Shown here piece by piece: positions 38,814-57,246 of a stretch of 64,000 nt of DNA. The stretch comes from Selaginella moellendorffii (taxonomy: Eukaryota > Plantae > Lycopodiophyta). Location: assembly GCF_000143415.4 (NCBI RefSeq), contig NW_003314301.1, positions 1,642,912 to 1,706,911 on the forward strand, read 5' to 3'. Every line of letters starts with the position of its first letter. The first letter of the stretch is position 1. Made by a program: the position numbers and the translations under genes. The notes under the pieces were generated by a model that worked only from the letters and a program-made list of their open reading frames with translations, made no database searches and had not been told where the DNA came from.

Positions 38814-39395
38814 AGTAAGCTCTTGAGTTTGGACTTCTTGGGAGGTCACCCAGCCTAGTACTATTCAAACCCAAGGCCTAGTACTATTTAAACCCAAGGA
38901 CGATTAACCCCAAATATCCCAAGACCCTTAACCAATTGAAAAAGGGGGTGCACTCTTGTTCATAGGCCCTTTCCCTCTATATTTGAACCCCAACGGATCA
39001 TCTCTCAAGTTGCTCCTTTTGGTTGCTTATAATGCACTATGCTTCCCTACAAGTTCACGCCCTCGTAAACAAAAGCTGAGAGCCGCAGCTCTCTCGAAAG
39101 CCCTGCTCTCTTGACACCCTACCCCTCGGATCGAGCCTAGCGGGAGCAAATTGGACCAACTAAATGTCAATCAACATATAGTGCGATTCCTATACCAAAT
39201 GTAAGCTCATGAGTTTGGACTTCCCAGGAGGTCATCCAGCCCAAGTACTATTCAAACCTAAGGACACTTAATCCCAAATATCCTAAAACTCTTAACCAAT
39301 TGGAAAAGGGGGTGCACTCTTGTTCATGGGCCCTTTCCCTCTACATTTGAACCCTAACGAATCGTCTCTCGAGTCGTTCCCTTTAGTTGCTTACA
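38814..39395 (-). mobile_element. Cassandra-like TRIM: two ~200-bp LTRs with a 5S rDNA-derived core and a short interior with PBS
   Basis: LTRs at 38814-39031 and 39200-39395. The reverse complement of 39217-39271 (TTAAGTGTCCTTAGG..TAGTACTTGGGCTGGATGACCTCCTGGGAAGTCC) matches the 5S internal control region. PBS TGGTATAGGAATCGC on the minus strand. Confidence 0.85.
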
Positions 39396-39477
39396 ACAAC
39401 ATCAACCTCCATTAGAATAGAACCATCTCCCACAAGAATTAGAGCTGAAGGATGTATAGTGGAAGCAGAAGAGGTAA

Positions 39478-52089: not shown

Positions 52090-54078
52090 CTAGGATGGCC
52101 CCTTCCTGCTCAGAGTGGAATTTAATGTTTTTACCGTGCTATTTAGTATTGTTCTGACCTTCTTCTCCCATGACCATTTCTCCTCGAGCAAGCTAATCTC
52201 CTCCTCGTCACCATCATCGTAAAGTATCTATGTACAAGCATGCACAAGAAAAATTTAAGAGGCATGTACATGCACAGTAGGAGCATGTACAAGCAATGTT
52301 TAATAGGCATGACAAAAACGACACTCACCTGATGTTTGCCAATCGAGGCGTTGTAGCGTATGATCCGTCCGCTGTAGTATCTACAAGATTTATAAAGCTT
52401 TCAGTAGCAGAAAAAGAATAGGCAGCATCACGTACTTTTGGTCGAGAGGCCACCATACTCGTACTCTGTGTCCGACAGAGTTTCTCGAATGCGCGAAAGG
52501 AGACACAGCTGTAAAAGCAAACAGTGTTCAAGCAAACGAAAGAAAGAGAAATGAAAAGAGAGAAAGAACCTTCCATACATGGTGCATCGGAGATTATCTG
52601 CTTGAACTCCTTTGGTTTAGAAAAGTTCTGCGTTTCTGGAGCATCCATCTTTTCCTGTTCTGGAAAAAACTACGCAACGGAAAAGCCTGTCAAAAACCTT
52701 AAGTTTCGTATTTACCTGAACCATTTCTCCTTGCACATTCTGATTCTGTAGCTTAGTTGGCCTAGAGCCGCCAAGTATCCCTTTGCAATTTTTGGATCCG
52801 CAGTGACACTGCTGCTCCGTCCCGAATTGAATGTACCTGCACGAAAGATTAGCAGTGTCACGAAGGTAGTTCCACTTACTTGTAATCGTATGTTATTTCC
52901 TGACCCTTCAATATACGAGATACTGCGAACACGCCAATTCTAAGCTCTCCATCGCATTGCCTGGAAATAGTAATTTGCTCGTAAGTAGATTGTAGAAGAA
53001 TTTGGCAGACCATTTTCGCAATTGTGCGTTGGGATCGCAACTGTGATTGATAAATCGAGACATATTGCCCTTGAAGGTCGCGTCGATCACCTTGTCGTGA
53101 CCGACTTCACAGAGGTAGAAGTTATTCTCGCCACGTTCTTTCAGATCCCATAATCTTTCTTCACACGTCTTGTCGTCAATTACTGCAGAAAGGAAAATGA
53201 GAACATTTAAACTGAAAATCTAAATTACCTTCGCCAATGTACTCGATCAAAAAATCGCCTCGCTCAATATTTTCATCCGCAAAAAGACCCCATCCACAAT
53301 TCTCCGTCTGCCAGAACCACATTCTTAAGGACACAAATGAGATTACAACGGTACCTCTTTAAGTCTTAGCCTCCGGCCATCACGCTTTTGAAAAGGAAGA
53401 TTCTCGCATTTGCCTTCACAAGCGCAGCTGGATGAACAACTAGTGTACAGTAATCTAAAACCACCATCAAAGAAAATTAACAAACAAAAGAGTGAACGAA
53501 GACAAATACCTGCAAATGCAGTCTGACGAGCAGATTTTTGATCCTTTGCAAGAGCACTGCATTCCATCGTCTTTGGAGACTTTCGGCGTTTTCTTCGTGA
53601 GATAAACATCTAAAATGTGAGAGAGAATAAAATATATAAGACAAGAGAAATAGAAGTCTTACTGCGTCTTATGTGAATATATGGAGGACTTTCTTGGTCC
53701 AGGCGCTTGATCCAAGAAGAAGGTAGACGAAAATCGCAAGGCCGGAGTGGAAGACGCTCGAATGCTACCTTTGGATCACTCGTTTGTTCTACATTCCAGA
53801 ACTTGAAAGAAACAGAAACCAATCAGCATTTTCCTATACTCACAAGCGATGCACTGACCTCGAAACCGACGAGAGCTGCTCCATTGATCGTCTCTCCGCC
53901 GGCGAGTGACTGGAGGACGCACTGCGATGCCTCTGATCGAAGAAAATCTCCTTCTATAGACCTTCGTTCTTGGATCCGCGGCCATGTCCTTCTCTGGATC
54001 TTCCGCTGCTGCCGATAGAGGAGAATGCTGGTGATCGCAGCGCTGGCCAAGCTCCAGCCCTCTCTGCTGGTTCGCCAT
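52090..54078 (-). CDS. SET-domain histone lysine methyltransferase, ASHH3/ASHH4-like, multi-exon
   Basis: PPYIHIRR, cysteine-rich AWS region, CGWGL, IEYIGE/VID, IDATFKGNMSRFINHSCDPN and post-SET CHCGSKNC. Start and end are approximate. Confidence 0.85.
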
Positions 54079-54085
54079 CGCTGCT

Positions 54086-54170
54086 AAAAACCCTAGCTTT
54101 TGCTCTTCGCTATGGCAAGAGAATATTTCAAATATGAGCGGGACAATGTATTTTAGGTTTAGGTTTTAGG
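54086..54170. promoter_or_regulatory. Telo-box motifs in the 119-bp bidirectional promoter between the SET gene and TFIIIA
   Basis: AAAACCCTAG at ~54087 and TTTAGGTTTAGGTTTTAGGG at ~54151-54170. Confidence 0.55.
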
Positions 54171-54197
54171 GCTCCAAGAAAGGCTGCGCGACCCGCG

Positions 54198-55668
54198 ATG
54201 GACACCAGCTCCAGCGATTCTGATCAATCCGATAGCAGCTATGGGAGCGAGGATTGCGAGAGCACCAGGTATGAGAGCGAGGATTTCGAGACCGGCAGCG
54301 CCAGCGCGAGCAGCAGCGATCAAGAAGAGAAAAAATACGAGTGCCGTGAGTGTGGAAAGAAGCTGGGAAAGCCTTCCTTGCTCCGGCAGCACCTCCTCTG
54401 TCACTCGAACGAGGTAGAATTCTATCGCTTTCTCCTCCGACTGATCGAGATCCTTTCACGCAGAGGAAATTTTGCTGCCCTGTCGATTCTTGCGGCGCCA
54501 AATACAAGTGGGAGAATCACCTCAAGCGTCACATAAATGACAAACACGATGGAAAGGTCCATGCCTGCTCGCGGCCGGGATGCATTTTCACCACCAGGAT
54601 TTTACACGACTTAAAGCGACACACGAAGCTTCACGAAAAGAAAGGAACGCTCCAGCGCCACCGAGACAAAGGCTTGGAGGAAGCAAAGGAGCACGCTTGC
54701 AAGGAGGAGAAATGTGGCAAAGCTTTCCGGTATCCATCACAGCTTCGGTATCATGAGGAGACATGCCATGGTGAGGCTTGTTTATATACTTCTTAGGTGA
54801 GCTTCGACGTCAACACCGGATCTCGATGGAACTCCGAAGTGGAAAAGCTACTCCAGAGTAGTATTGAGGCGGGTGACTGCCTCAAGAAGTCCCGGATAGG
54901 AGGTGAGAGCCAATCCAGGGTTTTGGGATGGGTGACCTCTCCGATTTTTCTAGACTTGATATGCTCTCAGTATGAGGTACTTGTATATTATCGGTTCGGT
55001 CTAACCATGTGTTCTTTTCTGCAGCAGGAGAAATCTACGTTGATATAGTCTGTTCCGAGCCGGGTTGCAACGAGCGTTTTGATCACCCTTCGGACTTGTC
55101 CGAGCACACAAGGAACGCTCACAAGTACGTGTTCTGCGAAGTATGTGGCAAGCAGTGCATGCGGTCGAAAATCAAGAGGCACTATGCGACTCATGACAAA
55201 GCGGGACTCTTGAATCGGGAACGTATAAAATGTCCCTATCCGGACTGCCCGCTCACCTATCTACAGGTCTTTTGTTTTATGACCACATTGTTTGCCTGCT
55301 CATCTTTCGTCACGTGTCTCGCAGGAAAATAACCTTCGAAAGCATATCAAGGTTGCCCACCTGAAATTCAGACCGTATCCATGTTCCAACCCAGAGTGCG
55401 GAAAGTCCTTTGCTTACAGGCACGTCAGAGATAACCACGAGAGATCAGTTCACCTTCCCGTACGTGAAACTCCTCCCATTCCTCTCACAATCCCTCATTT
55501 CCGCATCGGTTTGACTGTCTCCAGGGCGATTTCGTAGCGGAGGATCTCCGGAAGAAGCCGAAGGCGAGCAGTAAAAAGCGAAAGATTGTAGAGCGCGTGG
55601 AGGATATTTTTACGAGGCCCGAGAAGAAGAAACGGCGCAAGGGTAACTATTTGGAATTCACCGCCTGA
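54198..55668 (+). CDS. TFIIIA: Transcription factor IIIA (C2H2 zinc fingers); exons 54198-54413, 54464-54770, 55025/55028-55266, 55325-55459, 55525-55668
   Basis: Eight C2H2 fingers matching plant TFIIIA in order (CGKAFRYPSQL, CSEPGC, CEVCG..IKRH, FAYRHVRDNHE, then GDFV and a basic tail). A 5S-like element sits in intron 2. An alternative 3' end near 55733 is possible. Confidence 0.88.
54788..54904 (+). ncRNA. 5S rRNA-mimic cis-regulatory RNA (P5SM-like) in TFIIIA intron 2
   Basis: CACCGGATCTCGATGGAACTCCGAAGTG..AGAGTAGTA..GGGTGAC..GAAGTCC aligns with plant 5S rRNA. Helices I-V can be paired by eye, with compensatory changes. Confidence 0.88.
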
Positions 55669-57246
55669 TTCATTGTTTGTTTGTGTCGTGACTCTTTATT
55701 TTTCTTTTTTTCTTTTTTCCAGGCCATCAGCAGTAGCACCAGCAACAATAACCAATGCAGACGAATTCACCAGGAAAATTCACGCACAGGGTTCTTGGCG
55801 GTCGCGCCTGGGAAGAAAAATTTCTGGCGGAGAGCGAAGGTAGGTGGACCTGGGCTGGATTTTATCCCGTGGAGAGAAGGCTGCCACGCGGGCGGGGGAT
55901 TTATGAGGCGATAACTTCCAGGGAAGGCTTCACGTGGGCGTTTGGCGTACTGAGGGCGGTCGTATAATGCCTACGGCAGCAGGTGTGCGTCACATCGGCT
56001 ACTTTGAAAACAAGTGGGGCGGAGCGAAAGATTTGCGAATCTTTCACTTCAGGTACAAAGCCTTGGATGGCGGTGATCGATACAGGTGTCTAAGGACAGG
56101 GAAAGCAAGAAAAATTCTTTTTTTTCCACTCTTTTTTCCTGGCCTTGGGAGGAACAGCTTACCTAGTTAGTGTGGAATCACGGAGCGAAAGGGACAGGGG
56201 AACGAAGACGTGGTGCTCGGGCCAATTTTTCTTTCGGCGAGCCGACGGGAAAACATCGTCCAGACGGGCGAATATGCCGTGTCAAACTTGTCGCGTTTAG
56301 GGTGGGTTTGACTTTGGGGAGGCGCTGCTGCGAGCGCGGTGGTATTCAGGGGCGGCGGCGGCCCGGCTTCCTGGCTTCTACCTTTCGATCGGTAATGAAT
56401 TTCGTTTTGAGGCTATGCTCTCAATCGTAGATTTTGCTTTGCAGCTTGTCACGTGAAAATTTTTGATGATTCATCGAGCCCGGTACTGGTTACTGTCCTT
56501 CTCTTTAATTTCCTGATTGCCTTGAGGCGTTTGTGTGTGGGTGTGAGTGAGCTCTTTAGCTGGTAACTCCAGCGGCAAGGGAGCGCGAGAGCGCGATCAT
56601 TGCCCAGTCCCTGCTATGTATATTATTATTGCTGAGGTACTATGAGCGGTAGAGCCTTGCGTACTTTGTGCCTTCCGTGGCTTATCTTCGAGCACGGAAT
56701 TTGCTTTGAGTGTGATTCCGCTTGTCCGGGTTTGAGAGTTAGTGTAGCCTCTTCTCTTCCGGTGGATCCCAGTCTAACTCTGAGAGGAGTTTCTTCCTTG
56801 TGCCTTGTGTTAGTGAGTGTAAGTTAAATCACGGAGTTCGAGGTGGTGATTGTGTTTATTCGCTGGGTCTGGGTTAACCAACGTTAACAAACCAGTGTAG
56901 CTATGAGTGCTTTGTGTCGTCGCCTGAAAATACGAGCTGTTTCGTAGAGAGGAGAAGTGTGCGATTCAGTCTGGCCCTCTTTCAAGTTGGTCCAGCTCAA
57001 GCTTTTACTCGGCTCAATTTGGTGTACCCGGGCTTCTGCTTATCTCTTGTTAAGCATATGAAACACAACGGACTGGGAGAGGGCTGCAAAGAGCAGAGCC
57101 GAGAAAGCAGCAGCTCACAAGCTCTACTGGACGGTTGGTTTCTGTTCCTTTCTTTCTAGCTTTCTTTCTCTGTGTGTGCTTCTCAATCTCTTTCCCGTTT
57201 GTTGCAGGGGCGATCCAGATCAAACCTTCTGGATAGCGATCGAATC

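Follow-up and report, generated by a model that had tools for sequence, protein, structure and literature searches.

The 64,000-nucleotide stretch of Selaginella moellendorffii DNA analysed here (contig NW_003314301.1, positions 1,642,912 to 1,706,911; the whole stretch is called the window, and positions are counted from its first letter) carries on its plus strand the gene for transcription factor IIIA (TFIIIA), the activator of 5S ribosomal RNA (rRNA) genes. The second intron of this gene contains a complete mimic of 5S rRNA. The coding region (54198..55736) specifies a protein of 343 amino acids with eight C2H2 fingers and consists of six exons, 54198-54413, 54464-54770, 55025-55266, 55325-55459, 55525-55642 and 55723-55736, placed by translation and by the joints of RNA contigs. 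In the translated locus the introns measure 50, 254, 58, 65 and 80 nucleotides, and all five have GT..AG borders. The gene was identified through a profile search in which exon 2 was the query, a word-based search that started from the top match, and alignment with land-plant TFIIIA proteins. The best protein match is the 'Transcription factor IIIA' of S. moellendorffii itself (ACI25365.1, UniProt B6DCI8; also XP_024523610.1), and the closest further matches are plant TFIIIAs with approximately 40% identity. These matches and the alignment bear out an earlier note on this DNA, made from the letters alone, which had taken the gene for TFIIIA. The protein search matches included no second Selaginella TFIIIA, and no further lycophyte TFIIIA was present among the matches of any protein search. 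Two haplotype copies of the gene exist in the genome, the other one on GL377778 (locus L001). In the protein alignment an additional N-terminal finger is present in ferns and seed plants, so that fingers 1-8 of Selaginella correspond to fingers 2-9 of seed plants.

The mimic extends over 54787..54906 of the plus strand, in sense orientation to TFIIIA, and is housed in intron 2 (54771..55024), a phase 1 intron of 254 nucleotides located after finger 4, the equivalent of seed-plant finger 5. It consists of helices I-V with loop C, loop E and a helix IV capped by GTGA. Helix I has eight pairs (54788-95 with 54897-904), and helix II (54797-804 with 54845-51) has one bulge. The arm of helix III and loop C (54813..54841), which in 5S rRNA is the part that binds ribosomal protein L5, is almost unchanged in comparison with liverwort elements. 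Loop E is formed by AGTA (54860-63) and GAA (54886-88), and helix IV (54864-72 with 54877-85) closes around the GTGA loop. Of the 35 pairs proposed for helices I-V, every one is a standard pair. The Rfam 5S_rRNA model (RF00001) spans 54787-54906 from end to end (model positions 1-120) with a score of 26.5 bits. The element is a complete 5S mimic within TFIIIA, and the coordinates that the earlier note had given for it, 54788-54904 and the helices inside, are all exact. It shares with P5SM, the 5S rRNA mimic described in the 'suicide exon' of TFIIIA (PMC3378873; PMC3355732), the host gene, the sense orientation, a three-way 5S-like fold and the conserved L5-binding arm.

The significance of the Rfam match depends on the length searched, with E = 0.002 in a search of 401 nucleotides, 0.024 in 5 kilobases and 0.31 in the whole window. 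The gathering score of RF00001 is 38 bits, and no Rfam match anywhere in the window reaches gathering, the mimic included. A genuine 5S gene would be expected to score at least 38 bits; the window copy has 26.5 bits and the allele of the other haplotype 21 bits. The Rfam 5S search detected no further 5S-like match in or near the TFIIIA gene. Folding by free energy gave the mimic a z-value of -1.67, with a minimum-energy fold different from the 5S fold, and thermodynamic folding by itself is unconvincing as support for the mimic. Donor accessibility in a 300-nucleotide fold was uninformative and was left unused.

It is important to compare the position of the mimic with that of the corresponding elements in other land plants. 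In Marchantia polymorpha (L003:2548-2671, 59.9 bits with the Rfam 5S model), Riccia sorocarpa (L004:2208-2331, 62 bits), Physcomitrium patens (L002:2406-2522, 40.5 bits) and Calypogeia fissa (two tandem copies, L006:1451-1569 and 1603-1721, 86 and 88 bits) the element is located, in all four cases, between the exon of finger 1 and the exon of fingers 2-4. In Trema orientale, an angiosperm, it was located by eye at approximately L005:1790-1920, between the exons of fingers 2 and 3, which is the homologous site; the Trema locus gave no Rfam match at E<=1 despite its bona fide angiosperm P5SM. The P5SM cassette of Arabidopsis is flanked by Glu and Arg codons (PMC3378873). Intron 1 of Selaginella (54414..54463) splits the same E/R junction, and it is a bare GT..AG intron of 50 nucleotides with no element, removed (as a skip of 50) in all four of the RNA runs described below. 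The mimic is found one intron downstream of the site used in the five other plants (three liverworts, a moss and an angiosperm), and a cassette exon at the E/R junction between the exons of fingers 2 and 3, as is typical of P5SM, is not what Selaginella has.

The intron that houses the mimic has counterparts elsewhere. Its position and phase (CAT G/GT) are those of a plain intron of Physcomitrium, and its position is also that of an intron of Marchantia. In the other haplotype the mimic occurs at the same place (L001:2595-2704, 21 bits). The comparison of these loci shows that the shifted position is real and that it is derived relative to bryophytes and angiosperms. The earlier note had described the canonical site as a plain 50-nucleotide intron and had placed the mimic after the finger equivalent to angiosperm finger 5, not finger 2. 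The splicing and the protein alignment agree with this description, and the comparison of intron positions across land plants extends it.

To assess the constraint acting on the mimic, each of its helix pairs was set against the corresponding pair in Marchantia, Riccia, Calypogeia and Physcomitrium. The MAFFT columns for helix II were inconsistent, and a covariance model made from the bryophyte elements would not distinguish P5SM from 5S. In helix III, 8 of 8 pairs are identical to those of Marchantia, Riccia and Calypogeia. The five inner pairs of helix II are all altered on both strands relative to the liverwort elements with pairing kept, and so are four to five in helix IV. The two Selaginella haplotypes differ at nine positions of intron 2, and none of these falls within the 110-nucleotide core 54797-54906, for which the chance is about 0.006. 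Helix I has three of the nine in its 5' strand, and two of these disrupt two of the eight pairs in the other haplotype without compensation. Because the differences avoid the core yet break pairs of helix I, the core is constrained and the outer part of helix I is not. Judged on these alignments, the comparative evidence is stronger than either the score or the folding as an argument for the mimic.

Sequence related to 5S rRNA is also found elsewhere in the window. A Cassandra-like TRIM (terminal-repeat retrotransposon in miniature) lies on the minus strand at 38815-39400, with two long terminal repeats (LTRs) of about 200 nucleotides at approximately 38815-39030 and 39195-39400. In the whole-window scan with the Rfam 5S model it gave a minus-strand match at 39204-39297 with 24.9 bits. 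Each LTR has a 5S-derived segment that includes the loop E / helix IV-V part and is without helix III and loop C; an internal duplication of about 22 nucleotides occurs in the second LTR. Cassandra TRIM retrotransposons with 5S-derived LTR segments were reportedly described by Kalendar et al. in 2008 (cited in PMC4717578). The TRIM match shows that 5S-like sequence scoring below threshold is no rarity in this genome, and the Rfam score alone would therefore not carry the case for the mimic. The mimic was also considered as an LTR of the TRIM family in the window, and this was rejected, given that the TRIM is without helix III and loop C and has no flanks in common with it.

The same TRIM bears on the explanation that the mimic is a passive 5S relic (a pseudogene of 5S, or else a fragment of some Cassandra-type retrotransposon that inserted into the intron) and that retention of the intron is a side effect of its length. 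The Selaginella genome is rich in TRIM elements (PMC4717578), one of them with 5S-derived LTRs occurs in this very window, and the score of the mimic is sub-threshold, all of which would fit a relic. However, mimic and TRIM resemble each other only over 38 nucleotides in the core formed by loop E and helix IV, the flanks are unrelated, and the L5-binding arm of the mimic has no counterpart in the TRIM. Like Cassandra elements, the mimic is 5S-derived sequence outside 5S ribosomal DNA, but unlike them it is complete, is single-copy in the window and has no LTR flanks; no other copy of intron 2 is found in the window. It is full length and in sense orientation, and its host is the sole gene in which a mimic of this kind is known to be used. 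Its stems show compensatory changes, and its core is invariant between haplotypes while the flanks vary. In addition, the ancestral cassette is gone, so that the gene would otherwise be without this control. Taken with these observations, a passive relic seems distinctly unlikely.

The RNA evidence for intron 2 consists of contigs of four runs (X1, X2, X12 and X13) placed on 54000-56000; contigs drop rare isoforms, and minor forms sensitive to nonsense-mediated decay (NMD) could escape them. Intron 2 is spliced from 54771 to 55024 in X13 (depth 8.5) and X2 (depth 7.2), these and the following depths being rough. A 1654-nucleotide contig of X1 (depth 9.45) contains intron 2 entire, with introns 1, 3, 4 and 5 removed, and in record 9 of X2 the intron is retained at a depth of 16.3 compared with 7.2 at the spliced joint. 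The contig of X12 extends 56 nucleotides into intron 2. X1, X2 and X12 have introns 3 and 4 spliced out. A search with the interior of intron 2 alone detected it in four studies, in no fewer than 10 RNA-labelled runs. Only two fates of the intron were observed in the contigs of the four runs, namely splicing and retention of the whole.

Retention has a direct consequence for the protein. The retained form is read into an in-frame TAG (54794..54796) at 24 nucleotides into the intron, which closes the open reading frame 54350..54796 and lies 470 nucleotides ahead of the next junction. The RefSeq protein XP_024540073.1 ('zinc finger protein 208', 182 amino acids) is the exact translation of this form, with four fingers, and the model appears to have been built on RNA with intron 2 retained. 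In P5SM genes, too, a stop comes with the included exon, and mRNA that includes it is an NMD target (PMC3378873; PMC3355732). The presence of the mimic in the mRNA thus adds a premature in-frame stop in both systems, and productive and unproductive forms coexist; in Selaginella, unlike in the angiosperms, the route is retention of the whole intron, with the mimic one intron further downstream, after seed-plant finger 5 instead of finger 2. A cassette exon enclosing the whole mimic is, from the arrangement of splice sites, sterically impossible because the sole upstream AG (54795-96) is 26 nucleotides from the donor. The earlier note had excluded such an exon on the same ground.

The 3' end of intron 2 contains a branch-point-like CTAAC (55001-05), a pyrimidine tract and a tandem CAGCAG acceptor, together spanning 55001..55027, with AGs at 55023-24 and 55026-27. 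The first AG (joint to 55024/25) is used in the RNA contigs and in XP_024523610.1 (...CHAGEIY...). The protein ACI25365.1, derived from complementary DNA, is one Ala shorter (...CHGEIY...), as if the second AG had been chosen.

Three donor-like sites are located within intron 2: GTGAGC (54797..54802) in the 5' strand of helix II, GTGAGA (54903..54908) in the 3' strand of helix I, and GTACTT (54977..54982), 48 nucleotides ahead of the acceptor. The earlier note had listed these sites together with the in-frame TAG, and all are present in the sequence. It had further proposed that the switch operates by choice of alternative 5' splice sites. In this explanation the folded mimic would hide the three donors, and in the unfolded state they would produce extensions of exon 2 that carry the TAG and are cleared by NMD. 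Two of the donors do lie inside helices, the TAG is in frame and is 470 nucleotides before the next junction, and NMD could keep such forms too rare for contig assembly. Nevertheless, no joint starting at 54797, 54903 or 54977 was found in the contigs of the four runs, while retention of the whole intron is abundant, and retention already accounts for both the unproductive form and the RefSeq model. An unproductive isoform with the stop exists, as retained intron 2, and its production through alternative donors received no support from the joints; control by these donors is rather unlikely.

The reading that we favour, and hold to be probable, is that the mimic is a re-sited P5SM that acts through intron retention. 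It resides in an ancient phase 1 intron after finger 4, starting 17 nucleotides behind the productive donor, and the ancestral cassette site has shrunk to an intron of 50 nucleotides. Removal of intron 2 leads to the productive TFIIIA of 343 amino acids, while retention of the whole intron would lead, through the TAG, to a four-finger stub, or to a transcript destined for decay or for detention in the nucleus. As in the angiosperm P5SM system, L5 may bind the conserved arm of helix III and loop C and favour removal of intron 2. This direction is proposed because L5 induces skipping of the angiosperm mimic exon; there, binding of L5 to P5SM results in exon skipping and switches TFIIIA expression on (PMC3378873; PMC3355732). 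Intron 2 exceeds its neighbours three to five times in length, and the folded particle would loop out about 117 of its nucleotides. The decoy donors 54797 (in helix II) and 54903 (in helix I) would at the same time be sequestered by pairing. When L5 is not available, intron 2 would stay in the mRNA. We infer the binding of L5, the direction of control and the decay of the retained form by NMD from the angiosperm system. The retained RNA may meet either NMD or nuclear detention, and the mimic may have descended from the ancestral P5SM or may represent a second capture of 5S sequence.

Two known systems are useful for comparison of the mechanism. For angiosperm P5SM it has been proposed that L5 displaces an exon-defining factor, and this cannot apply as such to an intron like that of Selaginella. 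In yeast RPL30, the protein L30 binds a mimic of its rRNA site near the 5' splice site of its own pre-mRNA and blocks splicing. The Selaginella gene resembles this arrangement in having an rRNA mimic near the 5' splice site and an unspliced transcript as the outcome. It differs in that L30 controls its own gene, while the target in Selaginella is TFIIIA and binding may either promote or block splicing.

The geometry near the donor also bears on the suggestion that the mimic senses TFIIIA, alone or together with L5. TFIIIA binds 5S rRNA, and free TFIIIA on loop E and helices IV-V might block splicing of its own transcript, a form of negative autoregulation with a homeostatic logic. The mimic retains loop E, helix V and a helix IV with good pairing, and an element 17 nucleotides from the donor would be suitably placed for blocking. 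On the other hand, the best-conserved arm is the site of L5 and not that of TFIIIA, and the published effector in angiosperms is L5 (PMC3378873). Sensing of TFIIIA is thus quite improbable as the principal explanation, and a re-sited P5SM responding to L5 remains the preferred one.

Several points weigh against this preferred reading. The Rfam score of the mimic is below gathering, and it is weak by itself when a second 5S-like match of similar score occurs in the same window. The loss of two pairs of helix I in the other haplotype is not compensated. The four runs were only guessed to be RNA, and the contig depths are rough. In a genome whose introns measure 50-80 nucleotides, an over-long intron may simply be spliced inefficiently, which would account for the retention. 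The binding of L5 and a splicing response to it would, in Selaginella, follow by analogy, and a protein bound 17 nucleotides from the donor could equally block splicing, as L30 does in yeast.

With regard to novelty, Hammond, Wachter and Breaker and also Fu et al. are said to have described P5SM, the 5S rRNA mimic in the TFIIIA 'suicide exon', in 2009, and the presence of the mimic in S. moellendorffii has probably been published already. The searchable literature, in a search that did not include the 2009 P5SM papers, contained no discussion of TFIIIA in Selaginella, so that an earlier description is possible. What might be undescribed is the combination proposed here: the coupling of TFIIIA and mimic would have persisted when the mimic came to occupy a different intron and the mode of splicing changed, with the cassette lost and a retained, possibly nuclear-detained, intron gated by an element that may read TFIIIA in addition to L5. 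We regard this wider proposal as doubtful.

P5SM belongs, to our knowledge, to a very small group of structured RNAs with a known role in controlling plant splicing, and it is also in use as an engineered 'suicide exon' switch. If the proposal is true, selection would maintain the link between mimic and TFIIIA itself, rather than the place of the mimic or the mode of splicing. Displacement in exon definition would then not be the sole way for an L5-bound mimic to steer splicing. A compact element 17 nucleotides from the donor, in a genome of tiny introns, would be useful for comparison of mechanisms and for design.

The sequence following the mimic has some features of its own. An isolated 5S-like box, GGGATGGGTGACCTC, corresponding to helix IV and loop D, is located on the plus strand at 54925..54939, 19 nucleotides past the mimic. 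It matches copy 2 of Calypogeia at 13 of 14 positions (0 of 500 shuffles reach the score), and the Marchantia box was matched too. The segment 54946-54978 aligns at 24 of 32 nucleotides with part of the Trema P5SM region, a score reached by 1 of 500 shuffles. A local alignment of the mimic with the downstream sequence was not significant as a second mimic (383 of 2000 shuffles). The pieces within 54925-54978 may be the remnant of a second unit, or they may be due to chance.

Two observations concern the canonical site in other plants. The Ginkgo biloba model Gb_35789 has an insertion of about 60 amino acids exactly at the canonical P5SM site (alignment columns 302-362), which the annotation may have obtained by translating the mimic exon. 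The copies of Calypogeia score well above gathering and resemble 5S much more closely than do those of Marchantia, Riccia and Physcomitrium. This tandem pair would fit a mimic that was duplicated, or one that was renewed from 5S ribosomal DNA.

The public protein models of TFIIIA differ from the reading presented here at the C-terminus as well. The public 'TFIIIA' proteins of 317 and 318 amino acids end within a read-through of intron 4 (55460-55524 of the window; also L001 of the other haplotype), as ...HLPVRETPP.... The reading with intron 4 spliced runs on into the conserved C-terminal motif GDF...KKRK... common to other plants, and for this reason the 317- and 318-residue models look truncated. 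In the RNA contigs intron 4 is spliced in X1, X2 and X12, and introns 3 and 4 are retained in the X13 contig. Two kinds of public TFIIIA model would accordingly be isoform artefacts, that of 182 amino acids with intron 2 kept and those of 317 and 318 with intron 4 kept. Finally, within 55723-55745, 12 nucleotides that include the TAG stop of the window copy are absent from RNA contigs of the other haplotype. The two alleles would terminate differently here, the window copy ending in ...GHQQ*.
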